This document shows positions 15,707-48,434 of a DNA stretch of 64,000 nucleotides, one piece after another. Below the pieces are notes generated by a model. It made no database searches and was not told the DNA's origin. It was given only the letters and a program-made list of their open reading frames with translations. The stretch comes from Marsupella aquatica (lineage: Eukaryota; Plantae; Marchantiophyta): contig OZ316899.1 in assembly GCA_973895155.1 (NCBI GenBank), positions 15,837,974 through 15,901,973 of the forward strand, written 5' to 3'. A program made the position numbers and the translations under genes. Positions within the stretch are counted from its first letter, which is position 1. Each line of letters begins with the position of its first letter.

Positions 15707-15770
15707 AAGGGTTTAGGGTTTAGGGTTTAGGGTAGTCATGAGGTACCACTTATTTGTTTAGGGTTTAGGG
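15707..15770 (+). repeat. Short interstitial (TTTAGGG)n tracts
   Basis: agggtttagggtttagggtttaggg and tttagggtttaggg. Confidence 0.8.
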
Positions 15771-17250: not shown

Positions 17251-17276
17251 GATCAACCAATTCATTAAAAGTGGAA
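17251..17276 (+). repeat. Left TIR of the GATC-ended element
   Basis: gatcaaccaattcattaaaagtggaa. Confidence 0.8.
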
Positions 17277-17794
17277 AATTATCAATGCTTTGGAATATTG
17301 CTTATCTCTATTTAGAATATTATAAAACCAAAATTGGAATTTAAATACCCAATTTTTGGAATTTCTTGACACACATTTTTGAATTTTTTTCATGATTTGT
17401 AATATTTGTTTATGAATATATCAAAGTCAAAATACCTAGAAGTATTTACAATCCATGAACCTTGTATCATCCAAGACATTCTAAAGTGAAGTCAATTTTT
17501 GGGGGGGAAGGGGGGGGGGGGGGGCACAAAGCCTCAATACCACACAAAGAGAAGTCATTGACAAACGTAATATATATTTCATATTATTTTAAATAAATAA
17601 AATCCAAAATTGAAATGACATAAGTACCCTAATTACCTTGCCTAATCAATTTTAGACTCAGTGCCAAGCAGGCAAAACATAAGAGTAGATTACCAACCTA
17701 AAAAATAAGTCATCCTTATACTTTTGATAGTATAGACTTAACAACTAACTGAATCTATATAATCCTACTAAACAAATGATATCACTCTCAATAT

Positions 17795-20700
17795 CTACCT
17801 TTGCTCTTCTATATCTATCCTTGCTAAATAAACTTTGATTTCCTCCAGTTTCTTTTTGGGGATTCGAATGCCTTGTTCAACTTTATTCCCTTGATATGTC
17901 CAAAAGTGCATGGCTGCTGTTGCATTACACCATTCTTCTTTCTGCAAAATATCACATTCCCAAAGTTTTTGCTTCTTCAAACATCCTTCATATCGACCAT
18001 ACAATGATCTATCCTTTTTGGTGCTTTTGGGTCTCCACCATTGCAACAGAAAATCTCCACAATTTGGTAGTTTAGGGTCCATTTGAACTTTGCTCAATGC
18101 TCTTCCCATCCAGAAGCATCCTGGCTTGTTATCCTCAAATTCTTGTGTTGGACGAATAATGATGAAAACGCCTGCTTCAAAATCTTCAAGAGGAACAAAC
18201 CGATTGCTTTCCCTTTCAGAAAGAGGACCCACAAATATTGTTTGACCTTCAAGAATTTCCTCATCAGCCTCACGTTGAAGGATAACAATATCTGGAGGAT
18301 TCTCCCAACCCGTCACATCAAATGATCCAAGATCACTTTTATAGCCTGTACCATGTTTGGTTCGAGGCCAAAACCCATCCACCAGCGGCTGCTCTTCAAT
18401 ATCCACTATCTCCAAAAGGGGCTTTTGCAAAAGCTCAGTAACTGTCTTCCAATATTGCACTAAAGGAAACCTTTCCTTATGTCCCTGTGAGGTCTTATCC
18501 TTCCATGTTTTCTCTATCCACTCTATATAGTTTTTGATGTAGGCTGAAACATCTTTGGCTTTCTGAAAAAGTGTAGTTGGGGTTTTGGCAAGTGGTTCTC
18601 CAATTGGAAGGACAAGTGTTTTACTTCCATCTTCAACCCATATGCATCGTCCTTGGGGTGGTGACCATGAGTCATTGATATTCTCCTTGACTTGGTACAC
18701 AGGGACATTATTTTTCATTGTAAATAGGAATGCCATTGGTGCAGAGTGCCCTGCAATAGTCTTCACAAAAGCACTAACATAAGACTTGTAGCTAGCCACT
18801 TCTTGGATCAATGTGGGCAGTGGGTGAATTGCTTCGCTTTCCCATACCTCTGCCATAAGTGAAAGTAGGGTTGTGACCTCACGATGCTTAAGTCAAGTGC
18901 TTACCCTAGAGAATACTGCATCAACACCCTCATGTGTATGCCCAACCATAAGGAAAGACATGACAATACTCTCAAAGTGTCCCCTCAGAACCAACTCACT
19001 ACAGAATGCCATCATGGCCCAATTCTTGTTGTCCTTTGCAGAGTTGTCCATTTGTAAGTGTAGATGTCTTGGCAATTTCTTGAACAGTGTAGTGCTACTA
19101 CTCTGACATTCTGCCAATCCGCTTGCTACAATTGGTGAGACACAATCCTTGTCCACAAGTTCCCCACGATATCGATCAGTTGTGACATTGTTGGCATCTA
19201 GATATCCAATTTGAAAAGCTTGCTTTTCCAATAATGCCTTGAATAAGGGGTTTGTTGCTTGATGAGAATGAACTCCAAGATCTCCACTTTTATCCCCCGA
19301 ATATGCTTCCAAATCACGCAGGCACTTTGCAACGGAGGTAATAGTAAAATCCGGATCAGATGGCCACATCCCTGTCAAACTAAAGTGGGCAAAGACTCCA
19401 GGTTCCCGACCATGTGTCAACATCCCAGTCAAAGCCATTGGTAGTGGTTGACATCCACTAGCCATGCTTTTTAGTGTATCAACCATTTTAGGAATTTGGG
19501 TCTTGTTTTGATCCATCTTATCATGAATAATGCAAAGAAGATCTTCTGGATTTCTTCTTGCCATCACCCGAGCTGCATAGTAAAGGTTTCAACGAGACAT
19601 TTGTTCTTGCATGTGTTTTTCCCTTGCTGCTTCGTACCGCTTGCGAACTTCAGTTCTTCTCTCCTTCATCAACAACTCCTTCAAAGTGGTGCATTGAGTG
19701 CACTTTGCAAAAGCACTCTTCACATGGAATGAAAAAATTGCATAGTTCTCCCTCCACATCTTATAGAAAGACCCAATGGTAATTCCCTGACTCCCTTCCA
19801 CCTTCATGCTCTCAACTACCTCATCATAGATAGCATCTTTGTTATAGCAAGATGGTAATCTGTAGATGATGTTTGATGTTCCCTTCTTCCCTGTGTATCT
19901 GAGATGTGGCATAGGCTCGCCAAGGGTATTCACTACACAGTCAAGATGAGCACGAAACTCTTGTGTTGTCATCCTTGGTTTTTTGGTGCCCTTATTGCCA
20001 TGAAACCCCACTTTACAACCACCCTTGTATAGATTCTCATAGTTGTAGAAGGTGCTTGTAGAAATTCCAAATATAATTGCAAATGCCATTTTGCAAATGA
20101 TGCGACCTTTGACAACCATTTGTCCTTGCTCAACCATAGATCTCTCCCTCATTTCAAAAACATTCATCATATGACTGATTTTGTTATCACTGTCCAAACC
20201 ATAGAACTCAGTTCTGACCTCTTCAATGTCTATGCGGGGGAAGTTCCGACAACATTCCATTCCACACTTGCACTTCTTCATGCCCACTTGAGCTATTTTG
20301 TTCTCATCCACCTTCACACTTCTTCTCTGCTCCACTCTTTTTTCTTGGCGTGCATTTGGGTTGGCTGGTTTTCTCAACCCGCCCATGGAATAATGCCTTT
20401 TCTATTTGCTGGTACTCCATAGAAGAGAACAAATCATCCTCATCATTATCCCCCTCTTTATGTATAGTCTGTTCATCCTCAAGTTATGACAGAAGATCTC
20501 CAAGAAACTTGTCAGAAGGATAGAATTTCAAAGTTGCAATCGGCCATTTTACCAAGCACGGGATTCCCACTAAAAATGTGGGAAATTCCTTCTGTTGCAT
20601 GTGGATATTGCAAATCACACGTTCAACTAGCACCCCAACATGACCATCACCAAGCACTTCATTGTTTATTGCTGCTGTTGGTTGCCATGCTGTGATTGAT

Positions 20701-21518
20701 CCTCTTGCAAGCAATGTCACCCGATCAACAGTATAAATCTCCACATCTTTTAAGTACCACTTGGAACGATCATTCAAATCGTAGTTGTCATGTGGTCCTT
20801 GGCTGAGTCCGCCATTTTGAATCTCAATCGATTCACACCCATTGAATTGCTCACCAACATGATATACATTGACTATATCCCAAAGAACAACACTACCTAC
20901 AGACTGCTCAATTGTCTTTATGTTAGTGTTGGGGTATGGCAATTGAGTCACCCCATGAAGTGCTTCAACCACATGGACACTAATACGCCCTGGTCCCAAT
21001 AATATGTCACCACAAGTATCCTCTGGTTGAGTATTAGAAACTTCACCCCGTGCAACAACAATGCTTGTAAGTTGCAATAGCACATCATCTCCTGAACAAA
21101 ATGGTGCAACCGGTTCATTGTTGGAATTGGGGACTTGGTTTCCAACAATCCTTGAATCATCAGTTCCTTCAAGTCTCACAAGGTTGGGAGTATCATTGGA
21201 TGCTTTTTGGACCTGCAATGGGATGTTCTCATTTGCCAAAATGGCACTAGCACAGTCCCATATAACATATGAACGCAAAGCCTCCCCAGTGGTGTCAGCT
21301 CCTGGATTTGGGTAAGGAAGAGGTTTTGTTGGCTCAAAGATTTCAACCACCAGAACACTCATGCGGTTGTTACCCAATGCCTCAGAATGACAAGTGTCTT
21401 CTGGATTGGTCTTAAACACAACCCCCCTTGCAACCAATATATTCTCAAGATGAAGAAGTACTTCAGACCCTTGGGAGAACAAAAAATTGGCACTCCGAGT
21501 TGTAGTCATGATCTGCAT
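17795..21518 (-). pseudogene. Sola-like (DUF7869-type) DDD transposase with three N-terminal En/Spm Tnp1/DUF8039-like repeats
   Basis: ORFs 17795..18856, 18893..19567 and 19589..20386 are one frame broken by two TGA codons. Motifs: KCTQC, IIHDKMD, LQMDNSAKDNKN, FLMVGHTHEGVDAVFS. The upstream ORF has three copies of VARG..P.DTC...LG...V.V......LPYP......VxW and is linked via a TAA and a frameshift near 20400-20486. Confidence 0.75.
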
Positions 21519-21582
21519 AAAAAAATGTTAAGAAAATTACTCATGATCAATTGAAAATGACAGGTTGTCAGGGTCCAGAAGA

Positions 21583-24500
21583 AACCTCAATATCATCGTG
21601 AGGTTTCAGGCTACTTGGATACTAAAGTGAAATTCATCCAGGCACTAAACCTAGTTTTTGTGGTTAAACTTAATATGGTCCCATGCAAGTGCTTAACATG
21701 CATAGTTGGGTCAACTTTGCATTAAAAATTCCATTATGTAGGTATAAGGCAATAATGTTAGAAATAATAGTGGTCTAGAAGGTCCGCAAGTAATTACACG
21801 GATGTGGACTGACAGAATATACTACAATATGTTTGCGGCAATACATTCACAAGACCTACTAAGAGATTCAATTTAACCCAAAAGAATGAGAATTATTGGT
21901 CATAAAATAAAGTACAGTAGAACTTCATGATTGTCATGAGGTTTCATTTCTTGCTTCAAGAAGACTGAATTATGAATAAATGAATGAGAACAAAAATGAA
22001 GTACCTATGGACTTAAAGGCTTGTATTGGGAAAAATCTCATGAGGTTGAGAGAAATCAAGTCTTACAACCCATTAAAAAATGATCCATTCACTATTTTCT
22101 CTTAATGTTGATATTAATAGTTTAGTCCATGTAACTTCCATATGAATGATGGACACACACAGGAAAACTTACAACCTCAAGATGATCTTGAGGATGACAA
22201 TTTATGCCTCTATATCTCAATGAACAAAACAAAACATATGTAGACCTATGTCATATTGAGCTTGGCCAAGTATGCAAATTGATGGTCATAATTAGTTACT
22301 TTTAGTGCACAAGACAAAAATAAAGCTAAAGACTCACAAACGACTTAAACAAAGTAAAAGAAACATACCCAAAATTCAGAATCATAAATGTCTTTGCCGC
22401 ATGTGGTGAAGATAGAGTATAAGAGTGCCACCATGCGTCCTCATCAATTAGAAGATGCCCAAATGTTCATCAAACGTCAGTTCAGACTCAACTGCAGTGT
22501 CAGCATTGTCCACCATGATCTAAGAGAGTTGGAGTAGGAGGAGGGTCTTTTCATTGGTTAAATGAAGGAAAATGCTTAGACTTCCCTCAGAAAATAGTTG
22601 TAGAAGAGTGGGCACAAATAGAGAATGCAAAAGTGTGAGTAGCAGAAAAGAAAAATAAACAACTCTGAAACTGAAGTAAACTGAACATGTGGAAGTGTTG
22701 GCTGGGTTTGCAAATATATCTTTGAGAGCAACGGATCAACGTGAGATGGATTGACTAATGTTGCTGATTTTGAGTTTATTGGCGAAGACTCATTGGCCCC
22801 AGGTTTGGAGGGAATTGTCAGCTTTCATCAATAAGAATGAAGAAAAAACAAAGTTACTTAGCACATTTTTAATATTTAAAGAATGATGACAGACCTTTTG
22901 CTTTTGCATGCTGGATTTGTCCTCCTATATACTGTAGAGCTCTGTATTTACATGGAATCAAACGGGAGTTTCAAAAATCCTTACTATTCATTCTGTTTTT
23001 TTAATTTTCCACTCATTGGCCCAGTTTTGGAGGGATTCGTCGACTAGCTCGCATTAATAGACTCCAAGTAAACGACATTTGCTCAACACATATTAATTTT
23101 TAAAAATATGATGACTGAGGGACATTTTGCGATTTTTCCTCCATTATTGTACAGACTAGTGTATTTGCACGATGAGGAACCTTGTAGTCAGAATTTTTAT
23201 GTTTTTGAAATTTGAAAATTTTCAGGTTTTCCTTGTGGCTAAGTATTTTGGCTTGTTGTCTTGCAATAACAAGCCACCATCCATTTCTTAGTACTTTTTC
23301 TCCTTTTAGCAACGCTTGTTGGCCCATTGACCTCACCAACTTCACCAACTTCTTGGACATTACTTGATTTTAGTGGAGTAGTTGGAGTTGGCCTTTTTTT
23401 GCCATGGTCAAGTGTAAATCTCTCAATATTTTTTTAGAGGCCCCAAAATATGGATTTAAATTTTTGGCCAAAGACGAATGTAAATTTGACACAATTACAT
23501 TAGAGTTGTTAGGATTTGGTACCAAATATATAGTTGGTACCAAATAATTAGCCATATATAGATGCATGCCATATAAGGTGTCATGTGACTTACTAAGTGT
23601 CAGCTCCGTGTGAAGAGGAGAAGGCGGCTAGAGTTGGCGGAAGCTCGATTGGGAAGTTATTGGGGGTACTTCACCAAAGAAAACTCTGTCGTTTGTTGAG
23701 GCCCTAAAAACTTGTTTGTTGAGGCCCTAGCTGCCAAGAAGAGGATGATTCGTAGTGTGAGGACATCCGTAGCAAGAGCGCATGCAGGGCGTTTTTAGTG
23801 GAAGGTGAAAGGTTGTGAGGACAGCCGTAGCAAGAGCACATGCAGGGTATTTTTAGTGGAAGGTGAAAGGCTAGCAGGCGCTACTGCTGGCACGCCCTAG
23901 TACTGCTGGCACGCCCTTGTGAGGGATCAGCCGCAAGACTTCTCCTTGTTCATGCTCACATATCTATTTAAACTCAAAATTCTCTGCACTCATTCCTCAG
24001 AATTGTGTACATCGTATGTGAGGGAGGACTATTCAAGTTAGCTACAGTACCTCTGTCATAACTGTCTGCACAATCACCAAGGTACCGACAGTCAGTGTTT
24101 ATGTGGAATAGTGGAGTAGATTCCTGTTGTACTAGAGGTGCCTATGAATCATTAGTGTTTTCGGTATTGCTGGTAGCTATATGTGCCTTGCTCAGGCCAG
24201 ACAATCCCTCTACTGTACGTATGACTGGTGAAGGAGGTGCGTATCTCATTGTCCTTATCTTATCTTGGGTTGTTATCTTATTATCTTCTTTCTTAATTGA
24301 ACGTGAACTAATGGGTGTCATGAGTCTCCTTACCGGCTCAATGCGCTTTCTCATTTGTATTTGATAAGTTTCGTGACCGGTTCAATACGCATGCGCTTAT
24401 TATTATCAGAGTATGCTTTGAGGAGATTGAGTTGCATTGTATTGTTTAGGGTTTGAGTTGCTAAATTAGAAACTTTGATTGAGTTTTGGTATACCAGAAC

Positions 24501-27500
24501 GAGCAAGTTTAGAGTATCTGCAAAGAATCTTTTAAGATTCTTTGATAGGCGCACGGCTTTGGCATGGCTAAACCCAAGAAGGATCTGGTAATGATGACAA
24601 AGCAAGCACATGTTGGGCTTCCAGGTACTTTTCATTTTCCAACCTTGCTACTTCTGTTATTTTGGCATGTATTTTTTGACATTCTCATGTTTTTTGCTTG
24701 TTAACCTCACGATCGTCGTGAGGTTTGACTACTCTAATGCTTTATTAAAGTTAGAATTTCAAATTTTTTTACTTGATAACCTCATGATCATCGTGAGGTT
24801 TCTACATTTTCTTGCTTGACTAACTAAGATGAGGAAAGTGATTTCTACTTGCCTAACCTCATGATCATCGTGAGGTGAAGGGTCATCATTTCATGGCTTC
24901 ATGAGAGGGTGAAGGACATTTTTTCTTTTCAACCTCACAATGGTGATGATCAAGGTTTCAAATTTTCATGCATGGATAGAGAATAGTAACATCTTTTTTC
25001 TGTGGATCACCTTCAAATATTTGTGAGGATTAGGGTCTTTTTTATGGTTTGGCAATAGGTTCAAGGATATTTTTGCTTGGAAAAGCTCACTATCATTGTG
25101 AAGTTTAGCCATATTTTCATGGTTTGGTGAGAGGTCAAGGAGAGTATCAAGAATATTTTTGTTGGCAGCAAACCTCACAATTGTTGTTTCATTTCATATT
25201 TATTTGCATGGTTTGGTTCAAGGGTTGAGCTCATGTTTTGTCATTTTTATGCTTCCATAGAAATTGTCAAGTTCTATTTTGCTTGCCAAAACCTCACGAT
25301 TACCGTGAGGTTTGCTCATTTCTGCATCATTCCACCTAGTTTATTCTCAAGAATTGGATCTGTTCATTTAATTAATGGACTTCACTTGTTTGTTGTGCAG
25401 ATGATTACCATGAGTTGGACCCAGTATCTGCACCAAAAATTTGTGATAATGATGTATGTTTAACATACAGCTATGACATTGGAGAAGAGTGGGAAATTGA
25501 TATGTACCCTTACGATGGAGAAGTTCAGTTGTGTTTTATTGACATAAAAAAAGATCCACACCGATTGCGACAACACATTGTTGGTCCAATTGCATACTTG
25601 CAAATGCATTCTGAGGATCAAGTAACTGTTCTTGTAGAGAATTACACGGAAAAAAAATGGTATCAGTACTTGCTTGATGCAAATACATATGGAGTGCGGT
25701 TGAATACAACTTGGATTGATGATATGCCAGCCAATGTTATTTCTTTGGCATTCTTTCCTTTGGACTTTAGTTTCAAAGGTAGTTCAGATCAAGGACAACT
25801 TTCACACCAGGAGATTGCATCTGGTTATGCTCGAGTCTTACATTTGCTGAAAAGAAAGAAACATTTCTTGTGTAGGACATTGCAGATGGAGCAGTGCATT
25901 TAGACAAGTGGACTAACCAACATTGATATTGATCCAGCTGTTCTTTTCCATAAGAAATTTGGAAAAGAAACACTCTCCAAATGGATTGACTTGCAAACTT
26001 TGGTTGCAAACAAGGTGAAGGAAGTGCCAAAGTCTTTAGAAGATGACTTGGGAGTAGATATGTCAGAATATGAAGGGGCCAAGGCAGACGAAGAAGCGGT
26101 ACCAATCATTGATCCCAATAGAGAGGCATCTTCACAACAAAGTGAGAAGCTTGATAGTGTAGAGCCTCAAATTCAGAGCATTCTTGGAATTGTCCAACAA
26201 AAGAAGAAACAAGCTACCAAGCTTGTAGTTTCTTAGCCAAAGAGACGACCGCCAACCACCAAGGCACAAAATGTGCAGAGGAAGAGAAAACAGCCACAAG
26301 AAGAGGACAACGTGGAAGAGATTTTTGCACAACAAAGTGAAAGGATTGAGCCCATTGTACTTCAAATAGGAGGCAATGTACAGAGCAAGCCAACAATTGT
26401 GCAACCAAAGAGAAAACCATCAACAAGAAAGAAGTCATTGGGGAAGCAACCAGATAGCAATAGGGATACAGTTGTTGATCTTGTGCAACAAGGAGCACAA
26501 ATCTTACGAGAAGTGGGTGACAATGAAGAGAGTGAGTTACCTGGAGCCAAAGAGATTGAAAAATCTAACAAGATTTTGCAAGAGGTGAAAGATTACTATC
26601 CTTTTGGAATTAGAACACATTTTGGGATTCCGGTGAAGAATATCATGCAACCTCCTGCTACCATGTGTTATAGGAAAATTAACCTTGATCATGTTGATGA
26701 GATAATGACTAGGATGATCTTGCATCCCAAGCAGCAACCTCATCCTGCTGATTTAGTTCCCTACAACCCTCAGACCTTGAAGCCAATGAGTTTTGCAAAA
26801 GATGACATGACTCAATTTCAGAAATTGATGCCAAGGTTAAAGTTCTTTGCTATAAGTGGACAGCACTCTGCACTTGCCGCTCAAAGAATCTGTGAGCATG
26901 CCAAAAAACAACCTGATCTTCGAGAGCTTGCAAATAAATTGCAAGTACGTTCATCTTGCATTTTTAGTGGAGCTACACCAAAAAAGATCTTGCTGGAGTT
27001 CTCTAGTAGCTCAAATGAGATGAACAAGATTTCTGATTATAAATCTCCATTCATTGATAATGTGGAGCATGCAAGAAATCAGTACGCTGATTTTGGTTTT
27101 CCAAAACGGCCTGAGGCGGGACAAACAGCAAGTCCAATTTACAAGGTAAGTTTGCCTTGCATAAAAGGTTTAAGTTTGTTGTACTGTGTTATTTTTCTGA
27201 ATCATGAATGCAATGCCTAAGTAACAACCTCACAATGATCGTGAGGTCAACTACTCATATTGAAAAGATATAGTTTCTTTTGACATGTGCAGGAATTTGA
27301 GCATACAGCAAAAATGACCATGGAGAAGAAACATCTTACTGAAGTACTTGGATACTTTTTGCATCTGAGAAGTTGTATTGTTTGTGGAAGGAAGTGTGTA
27401 ACAAGTGGCTTGAGGGAGAGCTTCCAGATGGACAAGGTATCATCACTGAAAATAAAAAAGAGTCTAAGCTTCTAACAGTTTCAAATTTCCGGAGTTTGGA

Positions 27501-29541: not shown

Positions 29542-30326
29542 TATGAGTGATATTTGTACCCCAAATATGTACACAAAAAGCTTGTATTTAAAAAATGCTA
29601 ATACGATTGTTCCTTTGAATGATTGTATCAGCCAACTATTATAAGCATTTCTCACAATGAAATGTCACCACTTGACAATTTACAAGAAGAAGTAGGACAA
29701 AATGATTCATATTCAGAAACAAGAGTACCTGGAATTGCATCTATTGAGTCACCCCTTTGGAGTGATTCTTCATCTGAAGAAGGATTGCCTGCTGGAATAT
29801 TTCCATTAGCACCAAAAGGTAAAGATTTTGTTATCTTTTATCTGTGTTCATATTTATATAGGATTTTGAAATTAGTTGTTGTACATTTATTTTACAAAGT
29901 TCTAATTTATTTGTAATTGCATTTGTAACAGGTCAACACGATCTTGATCCATGTCACGTTTGGTCTTACCTGCCAGAAAATATAGCCCGAGATCGTAAAT
30001 TACTAATTTTTGATCTTAGTGGTTTATTTTTCCGATCGCAATATCTCGGAAAAACAATATGCACCAAGTCAATATCAACGGCAACTGTGCACACATGGCG
30101 TGGTAACATGTGGACAATAAGACCACAAATTCATGAATTTTTGCAAAAGTGTTTCTCAAAGTTTGACATAGGAATATGGAGTTGTGGAACTGATCAAGAA
30201 GTCCAGATTCAAGTCAAGACTATCTTTGGACCCGAAGAAATTAAAAAAGTTCTTTTTATCAAAAATCAACATCATGTTCAAGAAGGGCTCAAGAATAGCA
30301 AAGGTGGACCTGTGTTTTTGAAGAAC
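25401..30326 (+). pseudogene. Multi-exon gene: ParB/Srx-like domain + N6A/N4C (beta-class) DNA methyltransferase-like domain + start of an FCP1/SCP-like HAD phosphatase
   Basis: ORFs at 25415, 25991 and 26273 share one frame with two TAGs. ParB-like YRKINLDHVDEI..P..FFAISGQHSALAA. MTase-like NPDCKPARVLNNIIHKFSARGATIFDFFSGGSV*KSAFELGRECFVYSD. FCP1-like LLIFDLSG..IRPQIHEFLQKCFSKFDIGIWS. GT-AG introns start at 27146, 28264, 29141 and ~29819. Confidence 0.75.
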
Positions 30327-34880: not shown

Positions 34881-35033
34881 ACTGGACCACAAAAACATGT
34901 CATCTATGATCACCCCGTATAACACAATGCAACCACAATCACCAAGCATCCATCCATACATCTGTGTTGCTTCAGAATTACTTTATTACACATCCTTCCC
35001 CTCACTAATGTCCATGCAAACAATTCACATTAC

Positions 35034-38000: not shown

Positions 38001-38765
38001 ACCATCTGGTAGCACAGTTGTTCGCAAGAATGCCAACAACTCAGAAACCAAAACGTTGGGGACATTGTGGTTGCCGCAAATGTTCAGGAACATGATGACA
38101 AATCCCAGTTTAGAACATTTGCTACCGGGGTACAAAGACTTCCTGCCTTCCTGTATTTGCAGGGGAGAGCCAAACATCCCATCATGCCCAGGGGTTTCCT
38201 GCCCTATCTCAAACTCATCAAGAGGCTCTTCGACAGGGGGCACACTTGCATCTGCAGCCGTATCCTCTTCGTTGTCCAGCCCATCATGAAATGCATCCAA
38301 GTCTTGGAAGATGTCTCTCACCATCTCTTCCACATGAATTCCTTCGTCACGTGGTGCTGCCTGAGCACCATCCCGTTGGAGAGCTGACAACCCACAGAGA
38401 CCAGCTACAACATTTTCAAATGCACCAGGCAGAACCTCACTTGCCCGTCTTGCAGCATTGGCAACATCAAATTCTAACCTCCACTCCTCGTCGGAAGAAT
38501 CTTCCTCTGCAGGATCATTCCAAACTCGATGTCGTGGATCTCTTCCATGAACCGCAATATGCCGCCAAACCTCATTCAGACCCCTGGTACGGGATCCTTG
38601 GCAGATTGCACAAGGACATCTCATCCTACTGGCTCCTGAAAGTCTGGTTTGTAACCTTTCACGCTGCCAAAGCTTATTATCATGGCGTGATATCCTTGTG
38701 GGATGATGCAAAGGCAGTGCCTGTGCCCTGGGCTGGGTTTGGGGAGGGTGGTGACCAGGGTGCAT
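35034..38765 (-). CDS. CACTA TnpD/TNP2 transposase (Transposase_21, DUF4218, DUF4216), spliced
   Basis: RCPCAIC, SIHACPDGHVLFR, LRHFPLIPRLQRMF, RNVRLGLSLDGVNPF, TIADYPA, IDVMHIEKN, MKSHDYH, YFPPAFFDVMTHL, EPFVFPSQVEQAFF. Confidence 0.93.
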
Positions 38766-39297
38766 TGTAACAGGCTGGAAGCTCTGCAGTCATGGACAGC
38801 AGTGAACAGGGATGCCTAATGGTGGTATTTGTGTTCCATATATCCCTGACTGTATGTGCCAAAAGAGTTAACATAACGTGTAATAAATTCTCACAAACCC
38901 TAAACCACCCCAAAAGAAAAAAACAGGTTTGCGAGTAGTGTACCTATTGTCAAGTGAATGACACAAAATTCCTCAATGTTTGAGGGTGTCACCACCTCCA
39001 CAGCTGTCCTCAAATGTACCGCCTCTGCATGTACACCCATGACCATATCAGAGTCCAATCATGTATAGTCATAGGCATAGGTGTGAGAGCGGTATCAGAT
39101 ATCTCACCGCCGAGATTTGAGCCCACCCAGTACGTTTACAATGACACCCCCAGGCAGCAGGAAACAACAATCCGCCAACAGTAAAATAAGCCCAACTGCC
39201 ACCAACCATAACAAGGTACATTAGTTCAAAGATCACATTTATTTCAATGATCTGATTTATACAAAAAAACTTGTGTCCAAACTGATGCTACTACTCC

Positions 39298-40170
39298 TCA
39301 CTCTGATTCAGAATCGCTAATGACCCATTCCTCACTTGTTGTCTCATAGTCCTCTCTGTAAGGATCCTGACCCTTCCGTGGCCAGGCCTCAAAAAGATCA
39401 TAGTCCATTGGGTTTTGACACTTCCCAGCTGCTACTGATTCCACAAGCCAAGCATATGAAACCACAAACACATTATGGGACATGACATAAAAGCGAATGT
39501 CTCCCTTCCCAAACTTGCGGCAGACTTTGGGATATGACTTAGTAATGACATGAGTGGTGTCCTCTGTTATATTCTCCTCCACTGTCCCACCTAGGTCAAG
39601 CACCGTGGACTTGTACACTTTGCACTTAACCTCTCCAATTCCCGCCTCCACAAATACCATGCTCAGCCCTTTCAGAATGGGGGTTGGTTGCTTCGTCTCC
39701 TCAGCCAACATACTCTTCAGCCTTCTAGAGCTCTGTCCTTTGTTGAGTACAGGTCCATATTGGACATCAGCAAGCCGTGCCTTTGCTTCCCAGACTTCTT
39801 GTTCAGCCCAAGCTGATGCAGTAGCTTCTTCATCCTCCCACAGCTCATATTGCTCAGTATCCTGTACAATCTGATGTGCTATGGAATCTGTGATCCAAGA
39901 GGCCTCAACTACTTTTAGGCCTTGCTTAGTAATTGCAGAATTCATGTAGGACCATGACCACTTCTTTATCACTGATAGCCATGTCCCTGCAACAACATGT
40001 GTAGTCTCTGGAGTGATGTCCTGAACTATAGTGCCATGGAGCTCAGAGAATCATTTCTGTACAGTTGGCCAATGCACTTTGGTCAACCCATGCTGGCCAT
40101 GGACCAAAATGGCTCTGACCCCTGTAAACACTGCTGGGTGGTCACACTTTCTACGTTTCCCAGGCTCCAT
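39298..40170 (-). pseudogene. Tandem BRCT-domain protein carried by CACTA-C (one premature TGA at 40051-40053)
   Basis: Two repeats: VFTGVRAILV..LHGTIVQDITPETTHVV..VVEASWITDSI and ILKGLSMVFV..LGGTVEENITEDTTHVIT..VVSYAWLVESV. ATG at 40170 is in frame. Confidence 0.82.
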
Positions 40171-40762
40171 GTACACACACCCTACGTGATGACAGTGAAT
40201 TTTGGAAGAATGGGTTCACCTGACAATACAAGGACAACAAAATTCTTGCTTTTTGAGTTGATCTGGCCCACTGGTGCTCAGGTCCAATTTTGATAGGTAC
40301 AAGGGATATGTGAACAATACGTACTAGGCACCTGCACGGATGCAGGACATTGTTTGAATATATACTACAAAATCCATATCGAAGGTGAAATGAAGTGCAA
40401 CCAACTTGTCATGGCACATACATATTTTGTTGTAAAGGAGGATACGTTCAATGACAAACTTATAGGGCAATTTGATTAATCGCATGCCTGATAATTTATA
40501 CGCTTACAACTTAGAAGTCCTGTTTTAATTTAGCAGTCTGATGAAAGTGTTTATGAAAATGACCACTCAGCCTAAATACTTCCAAGAAGGCTTGTAAGGA
40601 TAAGTTTTTATAGGCATGTACCCAGCCACTGACGCCAGAGCACAAGATAAGTGCTGCCTATATAAACTCGCCTACCCAACTCCTTTTCAAAATTGGAATC
40701 TCTGCAATCTCAACAAATAGTACATCCACATCAGGTGCACTGTGCATGTACAATGTTCAGCT

Positions 40763-41443
40763 TCACAGCCAAGATATGTGATCTCTCACAGGAGTGCGCG
40801 AGGTAGGATCAATGGCATGGCGATGACAATAAAATATCCATCGATCAACACCATGTGCAGAGTGATCATAGATTTCTCTATCACAAGCATAACCCTCTGC
40901 TTGACGATCTTTCAGGCAATGATAGTGCCACATGGTGGGACACCTAGCACAGTGGACTATGTCAGTCCAGTACTCATGATCATGCTCACCACATGCCTTG
41001 CACCTATGAAGTGGGCAAGCTGTGGCATGAGCAGGCAAACACTCAAAACAGAAAAATCTCACACAAAAACGGTCTGGACATTTCCTAACATTTGCTGCAG
41101 CATCAACAGAGCCCTCATAGGACCCCAACTTCCCACACTGTGCACACTTAGCCTGCTTCTCCAAACAATCAGTGCACATCCAGTCTCCCTGGTGTGTTGA
41201 CGGGAGGCCCACCCCTAGACAGTTGTTTTCTGCAGCAAGGTCAGACTCCGGGTTGAGGTGGAAATGCCTCATGCAAGGGCCCTCACAAATGACCAGGCCC
41301 CCACCATCGTCACAAATGGCACAACAATGAGCTGCCTTCTGGAAAATCTGACTTGCAGAGAAGTTAGTAGCATCTGCCCCAAGTACACCTGTGTTTCTCA
41401 CCTCTGTCACACGCTTTTTGGCTTGAATTTTAGGTCGTGCCAT
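40763..41443 (-). CDS. Stand-alone PHD-finger cluster of EDM2/NSD type
   Basis: CAICDDGGGLVICEGPCMRHFH..WMCTDC..CAQCGKLGS..CPLHRCKAC..VHCARCPTMWHYHCL; 226-aa open frame. Confidence 0.82.
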   Translation of the reverse strand: MARPKIQAKKRVTEVRNTGVLGADATNFSASQIFQKAAHCCAICDDGGGLVICEGPCMRHFHLNPESDLAAENNCLGVGLPSTHQGDWMCTDCLEKQAKCAQCGKLGSYEGSVDAAANVRKCPDRFCVRFFCFECLPAHATACPLHRCKACGEHDHEYWTDIVHCARCPTMWHYHCLKDRQAEGYACDREIYDHSAHGVDRWIFYCHRHAIDPTSRTPVRDHISWL

Positions 41444-41454
41444 GCCTGCGCATG

Positions 41455-41598
41455 AGATAGACTCTACAGTTTAGCAGACTGCACAGAAAGTAATATATAT
41501 TTAGCATTTAAGGTACAAAGGCATTTAGATAGACTCTACAATTTAGCAGACTGCACATAAAGTAAAATATATTTAGCATTTAAGGTACAAAGGCATTT
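41455..41598. repeat. 72-bp tandem duplication
   Basis: agatagactctaca.tttagcagactgcaca.aaagtaa.atatatttagcatttaaggtacaaaggcattt x2. Confidence 0.9.
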
Positions 41599-42215
41599 GC
41601 TACTGCAATGAATTGGAATGGCCACACAAGGATGCAGAGCAGACATACTTTTGGTATGTTGAGCCCACACACAAACCTGATCCCCTAATACAATTGCTCC
41701 ACCAACACCTCAATTTTAATTGTGGCTATGATTCACCAAAGGAGATCTGCAACAACATTTCATGCATTTGAATCACATACAATAGTCGTGACATGTAAAA
41801 TGCGCATTCTTCGAAGAGGATTGGTATGAAGCAGTGTCATAAGGGTTGAAATTTATACATCCTAAATAGGCTATGATAGTGGTTGAGACAAATAAGTGAT
41901 GCATAAATCACATTTTACAGGTTATCACATGGCCCATTAATTCATTGAACGTTGCAATGTTCACCAGGTTAAAGCAGTCATGAAAACAGTCTTTCAATAG
42001 AGACTTTTATGCGAGTTTGCTAGCCTCTTAAATTAGGATATTTTGCTTAGTGCAGGCATAATAGGATATAAGTTATGTACTATTGACCCTAAACCCTGGA
42101 CCCAAAATTGCTCATACATCAAAATTTTAAGTAAATATCCTCTGTGTTGAAGTCAGAGTGTTAAGCTATAGGTCAATGGTATCTGGTCTGTGCATGCGGT
42201 GTGACAAGTGGTCCT

Positions 42216-42665
42216 CTAGAGCATGTGATCCAAACATGTGTAGACACCAAAGTCACCGGTGGTGGGGTCTGGGAGGGCAGGACAAGTGACATCACCAGGC
42301 ACACTGCAGGATGGCGAGTGGTTCCAGATGATACATTGTGCTCTGTGCAAAAATCGGCATCCAAGAGAACGGTCATCCAATTCTGGGCCAGAAGCCCTAC
42401 AGGTAGGACAGTCATATTGGCAACTGTGTACACACCCTTGGCACCTAATTTGTGGCGGGTCATGTACAAGAGACACAAATACCAAGGATGTCGGGAAGGG
42501 TACTGAAGCAGGTAGAGGCCGGCTGTAGTTGTTCCTGGAAACAACAGGGTACTCAAAGTACCATGCAGACTGGGCTGGAAGGATCCCAAGTCTGACATAC
42601 TCAAGGTGCAACATCTCTGCCTTGCGTGCAAGTCGCACATGTTCAGCGTTGCGGGTCCTCACCAT
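42216..42665 (-). CDS. Small Cys/His-rich hypothetical protein
   Basis: 149-aa ATG-initiated ORF co-oriented with the other CACTA-C genes (CQGCVHSCQYDCPTC..C..H..C..H..C). No family recognised. Confidence 0.4.
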   Translation of the reverse strand: MVRTRNAEHVRLARKAEMLHLEYVRLGILPAQSAWYFEYPVVSRNNYSRPLPASVPFPTSLVFVSLVHDPPQIRCQGCVHSCQYDCPTCRASGPELDDRSLGCRFLHRAQCIIWNHSPSCSVPGDVTCPALPDPTTGDFGVYTCLDHML

Positions 42666-43659
42666 AAGTGTTGCTTTCGTTGTGATGTCCTCTGTTCACG
42701 TCCTTTGATGAGCAAGGTGAGCAGGAGGTCGACTTGCCTTGCCAACAGCAACCACCTAAACTAATCAGTTCCCACTCATTGTCTTGGTTCCAACTACAGG
42801 TCATAGTATACACATAGCATGAAACGTGCATAGTACATATTTGATTCTGAGTTTATGAGTTTCCTAAGACAAAGAGCTTGGTGATAAACCCATATTCTCG
42901 ACGGACATGTATATCAATCGTATTAAAATCCTGTTTTTTCATCCAGAAAGACCGAAAGTCTCACCTTGCAGGTTGCAGCAGAGAGAAAATTCACTGGTTG
43001 TCGTGTTGTGCAAGTGAACCTCCACTGATGCCCCCGGTGTAGCCCCTCAGATGCAGGTGACACTTACCAACTCCCAAGTTGCCTGGTCTAACAGAAAATG
43101 CTTATATCTTCAGAACTTTATAGAGCAAGTACATGATCACATACTTCTAGATCTATTCATATTTGGAACTCTTGCCAACTACAACTCCCATTATGCACAA
43201 GCTCACATCAACAGAGAAAGATACAGAATGCAACTTACTAGGCTCTAAGCACCTTCACTACCTTGTTGAACCCAGTCCTGAAGTCTTTTCAGCGTGTTTG
43301 TTGTGCTGTCTCCTTTGGCACCCAACACCTTAGTCCTTGATGTAACAGAATGCAATTTTACAAGTTAGATGCTTTGGAACCTTCTATGGTCTTAGCTGAA
43401 TTGATGTCATCGTAAGTGGTGAAAGACAAGGAAGACGAAAGCTGGTTGAAGAGCTGTAGACAACACACTAGCATGAAGTGCTTCAACCAATCCACTGCCA
43501 AACGGAACTCTTACACAGTCACATTCTTTCAGTAAACAGAAACTCAATCAAAGTACAGACTCTGAAGGACCAAAGGAGGATGTTGTGAGTTTCTCTGTTG
43601 TTTAATGTGTTACCCTTCTAGTTTCAAAGTTAGCAAATGCTGAATAATGTGTCTACCAG

Positions 43660-44001
43660 ATCTTCGAAAAGAAGCCCACCACAATTAAGAACTTCGGTAT
43701 CTGGGTGAGGTATCAGAGTCGTACAGGTTATCCCAACATGTACAAGAAATATCGTGATACCACATTGAACATCGCTGTAGAGCAGATGTATGATGAGATG
43801 GCTTCTTGTCATAGAGTTTGGTTCCCTTGCATCCAGATCATCAAGACTACGACAGTCCCTGTCTCTCTGTGCAAGTGAGAAAGTACCAAGCAGTTCCATG
43901 ATTCAAAGATCAAGTTCCCCTTGACGTACCGCAAGATTCAACCTCCATCGCGAAAGCTAAAGACGACTTACAAGGCCACCAAGCCCAACACATTTGTTTG
44001 A
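43660..44001 (+). pseudogene. RPL18a: Captured last exon of 60S ribosomal protein L18a (eL20)
   Basis: [88 protein letters not shown]. Preceded by a CAG acceptor; internal TGA at 43876. Confidence 0.93.
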
Positions 44002-45699
44002 GTAGTGCGGGTGCAGGTTCCCAATTTTGAAACAATTTGGCTCATTTTATGTCCCGAGGGACTCCAGGAGTTTATGTATTGAGTTTCTAGGTCAGGATGC
44101 TTAATATAAGGAAATTCAATTTTCACTTCGTTCCCAGCTTCTACTAATTGAATATACACGAGATGGAAGCAAGAAGATAAGCCACAATCTAGCATCTTAG
44201 CCAAACACATTCGTCCCGACAAAGCAAAACTACAATCACACAGTGCGAGTTGTGTCTGCACCGGCACCCCCAGTGAGACTGATCAGCATTTGGACTGCAT
44301 CATTGTCTAGAGCTAGCAGTGGAAGGAATCAACATAGCTAGCAGTGGAAGGTGCAGTGGAGATAGCATGGGGACAGGGAAGGAAATGCAGGTTCCTTAAG
44401 CATAAATTTCCAAAAATGGAACAACAGGAAATGAAGAATAGGCACTGAAGCGGTCAACTAGACAAACGTTGTAACAAGGCAGCAAGCATTGGATTAAGAA
44501 GAAGCAAGGTTTCATCAGCAGAAGCAAGGTTTCATCAACAATGGCATTGTGAGACAAACCACTCCTTACAAATTTCTACAGACATCCTCCCCACTTGCAG
44601 CTTCTCGGCCAGGCTGGATTTCTTGTAAGAAAGATTTCTTGTTTGGTGAGGAAAGATCAAAAAGCAACTGATCAATGCCTTCTTGTCATCTAGAAGAGCT
44701 GGATGCAGCCCTGTCTCACATTTAATGTTAAACTGAATGAAAGACATTATGCGCATGCACAAAAGAAAGACATGAATATAATTAAGGTAGGTTTTAAGGA
44801 GCGGAGTCAGCAGTCAGACTTAGAAAGTTCAAATTGAAGCGCCATTAGTTTGGCGTGGTCAAGAGTAAATAAATGTTGGTCAGGGATACTCACCTCTTTT
44901 GAATGTATTACTGACTCAGCTAAGCCCAGCTAGACAGAAGTCACTCAGACCCACAAAAAAGTGAAGATCCACCTCCAAGCCGGAGCTCTATCACTTCAGT
45001 AGAGCAGCTTCTGGACGGAACCAACTCTAATCAGCCCCACAGAACACAAATGTTAAGGCTCCAAGTCAGAGCTCACTTCAGCCGAGGTGGACATCGCAGC
45101 TAGACCATTCAATATAGGCAGTATGGAGCCTGAGACTATGCTCATTGTTCAGAATTGAGGTGATGAAAGTGAGTTGGCATCAGTGGATACAATGAGAGGG
45201 GAAAAAATTCTGACCAAATCGCACCTCTATAATCAGAGAGGTTCTATTTCCAGGGAACTCATTCATTGACCAGAGTAATATGGCCCACATTTAATTAGAC
45301 TATGATAGACTCTTCCTCTGCAGACTCAAACTCGAGGAACCCCCACGGATGCCAGCATATACACGAGCTAGAAGCAAGAAGACAAGTCGCAATCTAGCAT
45401 CTTGGCCAAACACATTCTTCCTGGCGATAGTAACTGCAAGCAAGGGGGAGACAGGGAGAACAAGGAGAATAGGGAGGCAACTCACAATGGAGCTAGGTAG
45501 CTCATGATCAAGCAACTTGCAATTGCAGCAACAGTAGTCTTAGTAGCAAGCGATTGAGCTCCAAGAAATGACAAACCCGCAGTTGAGTCCTCAACTGACA
45601 AAATGTTCGCCACTCGACCCTCCTTCCAACTGCAACCGCCAGATAGTAGGAATAAGATAGAGAGGTTGCAGCCTTCTCAGTGATCCAATAGCACCTCTC

Positions 45700-45990
45700 T
45701 TACCACCTCCGCTCTTAGCACATCCGCTCGCACCTCCGCTTGCACCTCCGCTCGCACCTCCGCTCTCAGCACCTCCTTTGGCACCTGAGCCGCTCTCAGC
45801 ACCTCCGCTCGCACCTCCGCTCTCAGCACCTCCTTTGGCACCTGAGCCGCTCTCAGCACCTCCGCTCGCACCTCCGCTTGCACCACCTCCTTTGGAACCT
45901 GAGCCGCTCTCAGCACCTCCGCTTGCACCTCCGCTCGCACCACCTCCTTTGGCACCTGAGCCGCTCTCAGCACCTCTGCTCGCACCGCCG
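45700..45990. repeat. GC-rich minisatellite built on a 12-bp unit (gcacctccgctc)
   Basis: Alternating gcacctccgctc, gcacctcctttg and gcacctgagccgctctca blocks. Confidence 0.9.
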
Positions 45991-47297
45991 CCCAAACTGA
46001 AGCTACGTAGCAATCCTCAGCAGTGTGTGACAGAAGCACTCCACTCCAGCTCCACTCCGCTCGAGCTCCACTCCAGCTGCTCTCCGCTCGTAGCTCCTCG
46101 GCCAGACCGGCGGCCAGAGCAGCTCTCAAATTGCAGCTCCTGCCCGCCCACAGCTCCTCCCAGTCCTAGAGCTCGTCGTCCACTGCAGCTCACCTCTCCA
46201 CTCCGCAAGCCGGTCGCCCTCTCAGCTTGAATGCTCTAGAGCTTTGAAGGTAAACCTTCAAGCTCCAAGCGCAAAACTCCCCTACGCGAAGGAACTGCCC
46301 CGATCGCGAAGCACACTCCCCACTTTGTGAGACCGCGCACAATGTGACGACCTTCAGGCACGACGAATGTCCCCGTAATGGACAAGTGAGTTTTTCTGAA
46401 ACAAAACCCTCCGAGTTCCCACGCACATTGAACTGAACTTTGCACTCTGCTGGCGTGTTTAAACCCTAAACAAAACCCGCGCACCCTAAACTCGTGTCCA
46501 AAGGCACACTCACGCACAAAGCATACCTTAACACTTAGTGACACTTAGTGAACCAAACCCAATGAGCCTCGACCACTTTGCGTTGACATGAGCCGTTGAT
46601 ACACATGTTAGTACCCTAAAGCAAATTGGACACGACACTTTGTGAGCAAAGATTAAATGAACGCAACTGTAACCTCTTAGAACGCAACTGTAAATTAACC
46701 CTTACACATGCCACTTAGGGAGGGTGGACAAAGAATGGGGGCCAGACACTACTTTAGCCCTGAATTGAAAATGATATCACCCCAATATTCTTGTCAAAGT
46801 TGCCCATGAACTCTAAGGAATCCATTGAGCAGCATAAGACTTACTATTATAGAGGCAAGTACTCCCATGCACGTTTAATTAGGCTAGCTAGGATAACTAG
46901 CTACAATGCTCTTGACATGAAGACATTTAACTAGTTCTGCAACCCTAAACCCCCATTCCTTCTATGTGCACCTAGTGCTCCCGACTCTGCAAGTTGCAAG
47001 TCAAGGGTTGTAAATGGAACATTCCGTGATGTCTAGAGTGCATGTAATCCTTCTTGCACTCTATTTCAGAATGCCGTAATGGAGAGTAGCTTATTCAACT
47101 TACATATGACTGCCCTACTAGTGTTACAATTGCTACTTTATCAGAAGTTGTAGGAATGACTTTCACAAATATCCCCCAAAAATCAGTTGATAAAATGTAA
47201 CAACAATGACTCCCCTAAACTTGGAGTCATGTATTTTTGAAAGTCTCCCTAAAGTCACAAAGCATAGGGTCTCAAAAGGGGAGGTTTTCTTCTAGTG

Positions 47298-47954
47298 AAC
47301 ATATCAAAGTTCATTTGGGAAGAACATAGGTATTGGGATGACAAGACCACTGTGTTGATAGATGACTTACCTTATAGAACTTCAACAAATGCTTCTCATT
47401 CAGCGTTATTTCCACCTACATATGATGGAAATCAAAAAGACAATTTTCTTTTGAAAATTTTATGGCCTTGTTTGGAAAAAATGGAAATGGCCTATGATAT
47501 CCGTGCATATCTTCAATTAAATGAGCCAAAATGGTCCATGGAGAGTGCATCTCAAGATGAGATAATCAATGCTCATATCTATCTTCAGCTTCAAAGAAGA
47601 GGTCTTTTGAAAAAGTTTACACCGCCACAGATGATCAAATACGCTGATGTTTTGCACATTTCTCAATACGAGATCAGCTGGGGCCAGAAGCACTTGGTCA
47701 CAAATATGGGAGCTGTTGATAAAATGAGTTATGAAGAGGTTTGCAAGATTGGAAAACATCTTGGAATGCGCGGTTGGCATACTGATCATGCTTATGATCC
47801 CATACGGTTTTTGTCGTTGGTTCAAATGACACGAGATCTTTCTTCAAAATTTAAAAACTTGCGTACTCGAGATGGTTGTAATCGTGATAGAGAAGTAGAT
47901 AGGCAGGGAAAATTAGGAAATGCTCAAATAAGCATTGTTCAGAGTGTCCTTTAG
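47298..47954 (+). pseudogene. Continuation of the FCP1/SCP-like domain and C-terminus of the ParB-MTase gene
   Basis: NISKFIW..WDDKTTVLIDDLPYR..N..HSALFPPTY..KDNFL (HAD motif IV, LIDD). In frame with 30326 after the CACTA-C insertion is removed. Confidence 0.88.
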
Positions 47955-48408
47955 TTCAATTTTCTTCAATCTTGGCCGAGCGCCATTAGATAGAGTAGAC
48001 AAAGTTCAATGTGCAACTCAATTATATATAAATATTTGGTTTCTTAAAAATTTTAAACTTTGTGATTCCCTTGAATGATCTATTTTGACCCTCATTTTGA
48101 TCATGTAGTGAATAGTAGCACTATGTATTTGATTTTCAAACACAACTACGCAAGAATACTTGTTCATTTGAATGATGTTTTGAATATAGTAGTTGCACTG
48201 ATGGTTTTTTACTAAGATAGTAAATAATAAATTAAACTTGTACCTACATCCCAACATGGCTAAATTTTGAAGAATCACAAGCACATCTATCAAATTTGAT
48301 AACATGTTTGGAATTTTGTTAAATCAATTTTGGAAATTTAAATAACATTTTTTGGAATTTCTTGACATTATTTTTGGAATATTCATTACAAGTTTTGGAG
48401 AATTCAAA

Positions 48409-48434
48409 TTCCAGTTTTAACGAATTGGTTGATC
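48409..48434 (-). repeat. Right TIR of the GATC-ended element
   Basis: ttccagttttaacgaattggttgatc, the reverse complement of the left TIR with 2 mismatches. Confidence 0.8.

Follow-up and report, generated by a model that had tools for sequence, protein, structure and literature searches.

A decayed transposon of probable Sola1 affiliation with a ParB-like accessory gene in the liverwort Marsupella aquatica

Structure of the element

The window, a 64-kb stretch of Marsupella aquatica DNA, carries a transposase pseudogene and, on the opposite strand, an accessory gene, both enclosed by a pair of inverted ends (Table 1). These terminal inverted repeats, a feature of Sola1 membership, are 26 nt long, match at 24 of 26 positions and carry GATC at both outer tips, as the earlier note had described. 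The chance expectation of such an inverted pair in 64 kb is estimated at approximately 0.001-0.01. The left boundary is supported by a roughly tenfold drop in depth, and contigs of the element start at 17252 in three runs. The 13-nt terminus was missing from all the other loci analysed, and no second copy of the exact element family with both ends was recovered.

The accessory gene is split by a nested element which has the CACTA ends, 3-bp duplication and Transposase_21 domain of the CACTA/En-Spm group. Its other Pfam domains are DUF4218, DUF4216 and Transposase_24. In silico excision of 30327-47300 restores the NIF reading frame and leaves an element of 14,210 bp, which confirms the enclosure of two divergent genes within about 14.2 kb. 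The copy is dead, as had been claimed, with two in-frame stops in the transposase, three in the accessory gene and the disruption of the latter by the CACTA element.

Table 1. Positions of the features within the window
Feature	Position	Strand	Remarks
11-mer proposed earlier as target-site duplication, left copy	17240-17250		Partner 48435-48445; probably a piece of a pre-existing TGTTTGT repeat in the target
Likeliest 4-bp target-site duplication (CTTG), left copy	17248-17251		Right copy 48434-48437; from empty-site-like loose ends and offset arithmetic
Left terminal inverted repeat	17251-17276	+	Begins with GATC; 17252 is a possible element start, should the G be part of the CTTG duplication
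Sola1/DUF7869 transposase pseudogene	17795-21518	-	From Pfam DUF7869, motif blocks and homologues
Transposase main frame (865 codons)	17795-20386	-	In-frame stops 19589-19591 and 18893-18895
Transposase N-terminal exon	20484-21518	-	Three TNP1-like repeats
Span with about 11 copies of the 23-bp palindrome AACCTCAYGAT n ATCRTGAGGTT	21583-29541		Intergenic and in three accessory-gene introns (27226, 28316, 29519)
Accessory gene, 5' part	25415-30326	+	ParB/Srx-like exon, methylase-like exons and first NIF half; three in-frame stops
ParB/Srx-like exon	to ~27200	+	
In-frame stops of accessory gene	25901-25903, 26234-26236, 28757-28759	+	
Methylase-like exons	27594-28271, 28409-29170	+	
NIF-like domain, first half	30087-30326	+	
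Nested CACTA/En-Spm element	30327-47297		AAC duplication 30324-30326 / 47298-47300; splits the NIF-like domain
Accessory gene, 3' part	47301-47954	+	Second NIF-like half and C-terminal tail
Right terminal inverted repeat	48409-48434	-	24/26 match to left repeat; GATC at tip

The transposase

The transposase pseudogene contains the Pfam domain DUF7869 (E = 8e-31), an N-terminal CxC/CxxC region and the motif string CxxC, IIHDKMDQ, QMDN..NKN, GHTH..D. The residues D16/D19, D174-N175, N180-K181-N182 and G209-H-T-H...D216 are invariant in 11 homologues. The signature that the earlier note had called Sola-like, with its upstream CxxC, is present, and is specifically that of Sola1. Transposase and accessory gene were searched as separate pieces and not as joined proteins. 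The transposase search gave 2,364 representative homologues, the best of which are intact proteins of 1,101-1,250 aa with 55-62% identity, many of them from Riccia sorocarpa.

The three catalytic blocks have a spacing identical to that of the Sola1-1_Ec32 transposase, with 36 residues between the D of QxDN and the G of GHTH in both proteins; this comparison was made by eye on the supplement text of PMC12477816 and not with an alignment tool. Due to the DUF7869 domain and this agreement in blocks and spacing, the protein is assigned to Sola1 and is a DDD transposase with a DUF7869/Sola1-type core. The proposal that it fits no recognised superfamily is thus contradicted block by block by a published enzyme. 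Its tie to the Sola1 entries of Repbase is indirect and runs via Sola1-1_Ec32, whose best blastp match is reported to be Sola1-1_PPa (PMC12477816). A literature search for DUF7869 found no paper mentioning it. Pfam gives DUF7869 as the only domain of the window copy and of the full-length homologues, with no MULE-type transposase domain in either.

An AF2 model of the transposase core reached a pLDDT of 48.6, and its Foldseek matches are meaningless (E ≥ 0.5). The order of strands and helices in the model agrees with an RNase H-like fold, an observation which was not used as evidence.

The accessory gene

The N-terminal exon of the accessory gene appears to be ParB/Srx-like. Its AF2 model has a low pLDDT of 52, and the Foldseek matches, mostly to sulfiredoxin, Noc, ParB, PadC, KorB and SbnI, have weak E-values of 0.04-1. 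Searches by sequence in Pfam and in the PDB, the latter with the single sequence and with a profile, gave no match for this exon. The ParB arginine motif reads SGQHS.

The second part is, by its motifs, similar to beta-class amino-methyltransferases. The SAM-binding motif I (FxGxG) is kept as DFFSGG in the window and in the related loci L005, L006, L007 and L008, which are described below. The Pfam family N6_N4_Mtase scores 20.2 bits in the window, under the cut-off of 26.7, and PF01555 is on record for the gene in L006. Motif IV reads AIVDFG[KR], invariant in three loci, and V[FY]LDLTHP in Riccia. A pattern search of the Riccia accessory genes found no canonical (D/N/S)PP(Y/F/W/H), and every copy examined departs from the canonical motif.

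The presumed third part matches the Pfam family NIF on both sides of the nested element, with 22.4 bits before it (cut-off 21.8; profile positions 38-90) and 21.2 bits after it (positions 107-160). NIF is also on record for the L006 gene. There the HAD motif I, DxDx(T/V), reads LDCNGV, with the first Asp kept and the second replaced by Asn; decay has made this point unreadable in the window copy. The Riccia gene model ends before the NIF-like part.

The ParB-methyltransferase-phosphatase gene of the earlier note stands in its three-part order, but the word ‘methyltransferase’ overstates the case, as motif IV is noncanonical in every copy examined. The dN/dS of the accessory gene against Calypogeia is 0.13-0.24, with the NIF exon included, and the gene has evolved under purifying selection.

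Family-specific palindromes

A 23-bp palindrome lies in the noncoding DNA between and within the two genes and is specific to the element family. Its pattern has nine matches against zero expected, with none in the rest of the window. The Riccia elements carry a different palindrome of 22 bp. A role of GATC as a Dam-like control signal was considered and set aside for want of support, since the palindrome reads GAT-n-ATC at its centre, where the middle base varies, and GATC therefore occurs in only some of its copies.

Target site and true ends

The element was thought to be flanked by an 11-bp duplication, within the 9-11-bp range, and the 11-mers beside its ends are indeed identical at nine of 11 positions, with two C/T changes. 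Empty sites were read from paralogues of the high-copy flanking repeat, not from the same locus, and their loose ends were taken as a 30-nt consensus. Contigs of these paralogues align, uninterrupted by the element, as far as 17251, beyond which they carry a 30-nt loose end matching the right flank from 48438 (26/30). Both halves of the 11-mer pair are thereby already contained in uninterrupted paralogues, with an overlap of 2-5 nt. For this reason the 11-mers were probably not made by the insertion, and are probably a short repeat already in the target. No empty site exists inside the window, where the sole paralogue of the right flank (54736-55144) begins 183 nt from the insertion point.

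The paralogues give an offset of 31,186, at which the sole direct repeat is TCTTG (17247-17251 and 48433-48437). The duplication is most likely the 4 bp CTTG, with a register that is not fully settled; GATC (17251-17254 and 48431-48434) and TT are the other registers at this insertion. CTTG is a perfect duplication and gives the element symmetric ends, ATC…GAT, in which case the G and C at the outermost tips may belong to the duplication. A length of 4 bp fits what Sola elements make.

The principal alternative keeps the same Sola1 element and takes GATC, which is repeated directly and without mismatch at the two tips, as the 4-bp duplication. The true ends would then be AACCAATT…AATTGGTT, and their AACC…GGTT would be similar to the termini of Sola1-1_Ec32, AACCG…CGGTT (PMC12477816). 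A candidate element end in Riccia points the same way, as in locus L008, approximately 1.25 kb beyond the transposase stop codon, …AATTGGTT gives way to unrelated sequence. This match (L008:15878-15885) is, however, an 8-mer with a chance expectation of about 0.1-0.2, and its partner end falls outside the locus. Alignment of the two Riccia loci, L007 and L008, gave no termini, since the coding parts alone align and the far ends lie beyond the 10-kb flanks. Against this register, GATC is missing from the loose ends in three contigs of the paralogues, which would need to share a 6-nt gap, and the element contigs begin at 17252 rather than 17255. A GATC duplication is accordingly improbable, and CTTG is preferred.

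Recurrence of the gene pair

Both Riccia sorocarpa loci, L007 and L008, have a transposase and, divergent from it on the opposite strand as in the window, a ParB-like/methylase-like gene; L007 has a NIF-like exon as well. The same order of ParB-like, methylase-like and NIF phosphatase-like parts is found in L006 and L005 (Calypogeia), and recurs in four loci in all. In the Calypogeia locus L005 no DUF7869 transposase was present in the 10 kb upstream of the accessory gene.

Giant transposons often capture genes, and the accessory gene could be a host or foreign gene taken up passively, after the manner of Pack-type cargo, and with no function in the element. The DUF7869 loci L001 and L009, which are without the accessory gene, would suit such an origin. 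It is nevertheless a very unlikely one, given that the divergent layout is kept in elements whose proteins share only 27-40% identity, and in a brown alga (PMC12477816), that the dN/dS of the gene is low and that each element family has its own palindrome. From these sequence comparisons, the second gene is read as a conserved partner of Sola1 transposases in other liverworts and not a chance neighbour. The pairing of transposase and cargo described in the earlier note is upheld as a conserved two-gene transposon whose pair is confirmed in Riccia, but the combination is not new, having been published for Sola1-1_Ec32.

Interpretation

The stretch 17251/2-48433/4 is interpreted, with a probability of about 80%, as one decayed copy of an autonomous element of the Sola1 superfamily, which landed in a high-copy repeat of the host and was subsequently interrupted by a CACTA element. 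The undescribed superfamily envisaged in the earlier note, with duplications of about 11 bp, a Sola-like enzyme, GATC termini and its own epigenetic module, is favoured by the GATC tips and by the flanking match of 9/11 but is highly improbable in view of the uninterrupted paralogous sites, the block-by-block match to the published Sola1 enzyme and the gene pairing already in print (PMC12477816). A new superfamily can no longer be claimed, and a false lead is avoided.

Transposition of the Sola1 element would proceed by cut-and-paste with a 4-bp CTTG duplication. The accessory protein may bind the palindromes of its own element through the ParB-like part, by analogy with ParB and parS. Once bound, it would act on the chromatin or transcription of the element and not on the chemistry of transposition. 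A possible target of the phosphatase-like part is the C-terminal domain (CTD) of RNA polymerase II, and the methylase-like part would more likely bind SAM or DNA than methylate. Together these steps suggest, tentatively and with less than even odds, a three-part self-recognition protein of liverwort Sola1 elements. In such a protein the ParB-like part would read a family-private palindrome, a non-methylating, methylase-derived part would sense SAM or DNA, and the CTD-phosphatase-like part would alter the activity of RNA polymerase II, or the chromatin, at the element. If so, the transposon would have a device of its own for locus-specific control or anti-silencing, and the algal idea of binding and modifying one's own DNA would reach land plants, there using another effector.

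With the new superfamily discounted, the element represents a land-plant branch of the recently described giant DNA transposons with a ParB-like accessory protein and matching palindromes. To the published description the liverwort version adds a conserved NIF phosphatase-like domain, a methylase fold whose catalytic motif IV is never canonical but which remains under purifying selection, and the family-specific 23-bp palindrome.

Comparison with known systems

The closest known system is Sola1-1_Ec32 of the brown alga Ectocarpus, for which the pairing of a Sola1 transposase and a ParB-like/DNA-methyltransferase gene on the other strand was published in 2025 (PMC12477816, Genome Biol). It too is a Sola1 element of giant size whose ends are short motifs, and its listed target-site duplication is 4 bp. 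The transposase blocks D / QxDN..NKN / MVGHTH..D are common to both, and the algal accessory gene has ParB-like and N4C/N6A-type DNA methyltransferase domains. In contrast, the host here is a land plant. Relative to the published description, from which the Ectocarpus accessory protein is known, the liverwort element differs in the three TNP1-like repeats at the N-terminus of its transposase, the conserved NIF/FCP1-like part, a motif IV of AIVDFG[KR], or V[FY]LDLTHP in Riccia, in place of (D/N/S)PP(Y/F), and the 23-bp palindromes scattered in the spacer and introns.

The likeness to Mutator/MULE is confined to the apparent 9-11-bp flanking repeat, which was not made by insertion, and the MULE transposase domain is absent from the liverwort element. 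Basidiomycete KDZ elements with TET/JBP genes (Iyer et al. 2014, as cited in PMC12477816) are also constantly accompanied by a gene of DNA-modification type, although, as far as that citation describes them, transposase and cargo are unrelated to those of the liverwort and a ParB-like domain is lacking.

In red algae, Plavaka elements carry ParB-bearing accessory genes with inverted-repeat arrays (bioRxiv 10.1101/2025.02.11.637652). The PAG3 protein of these giant DNA transposons has an N-terminal ParB-like domain, the arrays lie beside its gene, and it has been proposed to bind and modify its own element. The transposase is, however, of the Plavaka/CACTA-like superfamily, and the ParB-like domain is joined by a 2OG oxygenase rather than by a methylase-like and phosphatase-like pair.

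The ParB-methyltransferase fusions of phages and plasmids, and the ParB-parS system (PMC4738411), share the order of a ParB-like part followed by a beta-class amino-methyltransferase, and palindromic candidate sites. The liverwort gene differs in being eukaryotic and intron-containing, with the arginine motif SGQHS, a degenerate motif IV and no partner ATPase. If its protein does bind the palindromes of the element, it would represent a eukaryotic, transposon-encoded analogue of ParB-parS.

Transposase and superfamily assignment

The element is a real, dead Sola1 transposon which carries the usual helper gene of its lineage and does not represent a new superfamily. The core of its transposase matches the Pfam family DUF7869 (E = 8e-31), of which no mention was found in a search of published papers. 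An exhaustive HMMER search recovered 2,364 representative relatives of this core, the best being 55-62% identical, and the named relatives belong to the liverwort Riccia sorocarpa, amphioxus and sea urchin. Across 11 homologues the invariant columns are D16/D19, D174-N175, N180-K181-N182 and G-H-T-H…D216. The transposase of the curated Ectocarpus family Sola1-1_Ec32, with Repbase Sola1-1_PPa of Physcomitrella as its best blastp match, has been printed and contains a CxxC shortly ahead of …MMDGANQ…, then …QVDN…ENKNN…, then …MMVGHTH..IDQ… (PMC12477816). The matching blocks in the window transposase are IIHDKMDQ, LQMDNSAKDNKN and LMVGHTHEGVD, and the span between the QxDN aspartate and the GHTH glycine is exactly 36 residues in both proteins, which were compared by eye. 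As the series of blocks and this spacing are common to both, DUF7869 is taken, at the level of sequence motifs, to be the Sola1 core. The earlier note was thus correct in calling the transposase Sola-like. Its proposal of an undescribed family outside the recognised superfamilies fails, as the transposase matches known Sola1 and the pairing of genes is already published for Sola1-1_Ec32.

The open reading frame immediately upstream of the main transposase frame is assigned as the N-terminal exon because intact homologues (1,101-1,250 aa) start with the same repeated TNP1-like module. The in-frame stops in both genes bear out the view that this copy is dead. A 2,637-aa protein on eukaryotic groundwater-metagenome contigs (L002:7902-15815; also L003 and L004) combines a DUF7869/Sola1 core with a SET domain at its C terminus, and may represent a Sola1 transposase that is domesticated or linked to chromatin.

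Coordinates of the coding and nested features in the window and in Riccia sorocarpa locus L007
Feature	Location	Strand or orientation	Remarks
Transposase main frame	17795-20386	-	single 865-codon frame, 2 in-frame stops
Transposase N-terminal exon	20484-21518	-	344-codon ORF, different frame
Accessory gene exons	25415-27200, 27594-28271, 28409-29170, 30087-30326, 47301-47954	+	3 in-frame stops
CACTA element	30327-47297		inside Sola1 element; CACTAG…CTAGTG ends, AAC duplication
Transposase	L007:10001-13774	+	Riccia sorocarpa
ParB-like piece	L007:5624-4830	divergent from transposase	Riccia sorocarpa
Methylase motif I piece	L007:3168-3007	divergent from transposase	Riccia sorocarpa
NIF-like piece	L007:685-476	divergent from transposase	Riccia sorocarpa

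Architecture and repeats

The structure described in the earlier note was accurate. The 26-nt inverted arms (17251-17276 and 48409-48434) are complementary at 24/26 positions and both are tipped with GATC, the chance expectation for such a pair in 64 kb being ~0.001-0.01 by the author's own estimate. Within the window, a 20-nt form of the terminus is present at 2 sites, exclusively the two element ends. The flanking 11-mers (17240-17250 and 48435-48445) are identical at 9/11 positions, and the element measures 14,210 bp without 30327-47300, the nested CACTA plus one copy of its AAC duplication. This CACTA contains the Pfam domains Transposase_21, DUF4218, DUF4216 and Transposase_24. In-silico excision of 30327-47300, suggested by the same note, rejoins in frame the two halves of the Pfam NIF domain, which cover profile positions 38-90 and 107-160. 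The minus-strand ORFs at 39298-41443, which lie upstream of the CACTA transposase and contain BRCT and NSD-like PHD fingers, may be pieces captured from the host or cargo of the CACTA.

Near both ends of the Sola1 element (17353-17371 and 48349-48367) the same 19-nt stretch (TTTTTGGAATTTCTTGACA) is found without a mismatch, along with several TTTGGAAT motifs, all in direct rather than inverted orientation; these are possible subterminal binding repeats for the transposase. A 398-nt inverted repeat (83%; 48630-49027 and 54736-55133) ties the right flank to a neighbouring long repeat unit. Short interstitial TTTAGGG telomere-type repeats occur at 15712-15771 and 42086-42110.

A 23-bp palindrome is present 9 times in the window at ≤3 mismatches, against 0 expected, and ~11 times with looser matching. 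Its copies are confined to 21583-29541, both the CACTA element and the flanks being free of it, and each of the three cargo introns holds one (27226, 28316 and 29519). The first two open their introns, 6-45 nt beyond the end of the preceding ORF, and the third lies ~350 nt beyond. The non-coding parts of the Riccia Sola1 elements (L007 and L008) are full of a different 22-bp palindrome (GCTTCGGGACGCGTCCCGAAGC), some copies being downstream of the transposase gene. Between the window genes, the spacer contains a tandem pair of 57-58-bp units, 93% alike (23756-23870).

Target-site duplication

Sola elements generate 4-bp duplications (PMC10741241), as does Sola1-1_Ec32 (PMC12477816). The 11-bp duplication that had been claimed would therefore be anomalous, and for this reason contigs of four public runs were aligned to the boundary region (16251-20250). 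A high-copy repeat makes up the left flank, at ~10x the depth of the element, with a drop in depth at the boundary. Element contigs start exactly at 17252 in three runs, and paralogue contigs align up to 17251 (one in run X2, three in run X4). Beyond that point the X4 paralogue contigs have a loose end; its 30-nt consensus agrees at 26/30 positions with the right flank, starting from 48438. Where the host repeat is uninterrupted, its copies therefore run from the left flank to 17251 directly into the right flank at 48438; these sites are paralogues rather than an empty allele, and the continuation is read from the 30-nt consensus alone. The sole direct repeat left at this offset is TCTTG (17247-51 and 48433-37). 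Since the target holds TGTTTGT twice, both 11-mers would have pre-existed side by side, overlapping by a few bases, and the claimed duplication most likely only reflects the make-up of the target.

Symmetric ends would be given by two readings, a CTTG duplication with ATC…GAT ends or a TT duplication with GATC…GATC ends; the known 4-bp rule of the family favours CTTG. A third register, in which GATC would be the duplication and the true ends AACC…GGTT, is unlikely: such ends resemble the Sola1-1_Ec32 termini (AACCG…CGGTT) and a possible Riccia end (L008:15878-15885), but a 6-nt difference from all paralogues is required.

Accessory gene and its association with the transposase

The first part of the accessory gene has no Pfam match. 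Its AF2 model, built from four homologues, reached a pLDDT of only 52, and the Foldseek list for this model is mostly sulfiredoxin, Noc, ParB, PadC, KorB and SbnI (E = 0.04-1), so that the fold is probably ParB/Srx. The position of the usual ParB arginine motif is occupied by SGQHS. In the methylase-like part, motif I (DFFSGG) is kept in every locus. Motif IV takes the form AIVDFG[KR] in three loci (the window, Calypogeia and one ENA contig) and V[FY]LDLTHP in Riccia, the canonical (D/N/S)PP(Y/F) being absent from all these copies. The NIF-like part comes next on this strand at four loci: the window, L005 (Calypogeia), L006 (a further cargo-gene locus; NIF motif I LDCNGV) and L007. Comparison with the Calypogeia copy gives dN/dS values of 0.14 (methylase-like exon), 0.24, 0.21 and 0.13 (NIF exon), at a dS close to saturation; such values indicate that the gene was functional through most of its history.

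The transposase and accessory gene travel together. The co-occurrence expected by the earlier note is found in both Riccia loci, L008 having the layout of L007 with no detectable NIF piece. Identity to the window proteins is only 27-40%, hence the association is old. The cargo gene is absent from the other DUF7869 loci L001 and L009, and no DUF7869 gene lies within 10 kb upstream of the Calypogeia homologue. Upstream of that homologue, on the opposite strand, is an ORF (L005:150-809, minus strand; ORFs reaching 3709) with DFLENY…SDGAASQFK…GHGKG. It resembles a different DDD-type transposase but has neither a Pfam match nor similarity to the window transposase.

Comparison with known systems

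This kind of element is already known, since Sola1-1_Ec32, PAG3 and ParB-fused methylases have been published. Sola1-1_Ec32 (21.5 kb) carries, on the strand opposite its transposase, an accessory gene for a 1,104-aa protein with ParB-like and N4C/N6A methyltransferase domains (PMC12477816). The ParB-like PAG3 genes of red algae adjoin inverted-repeat arrays, and the PAG3 protein has been proposed to bind its own element (bioRxiv 10.1101/2025.02.11.637652). ParB-fused Dam-type methylases have also been recorded in chlorophytes and chytrids (PMC4738411). Beyond the published description of Sola1-1_Ec32, with the algal proteins compared by description only, the window element has a conserved NIF-like domain and a consistently non-canonical motif IV; it also differs in its land-plant host.
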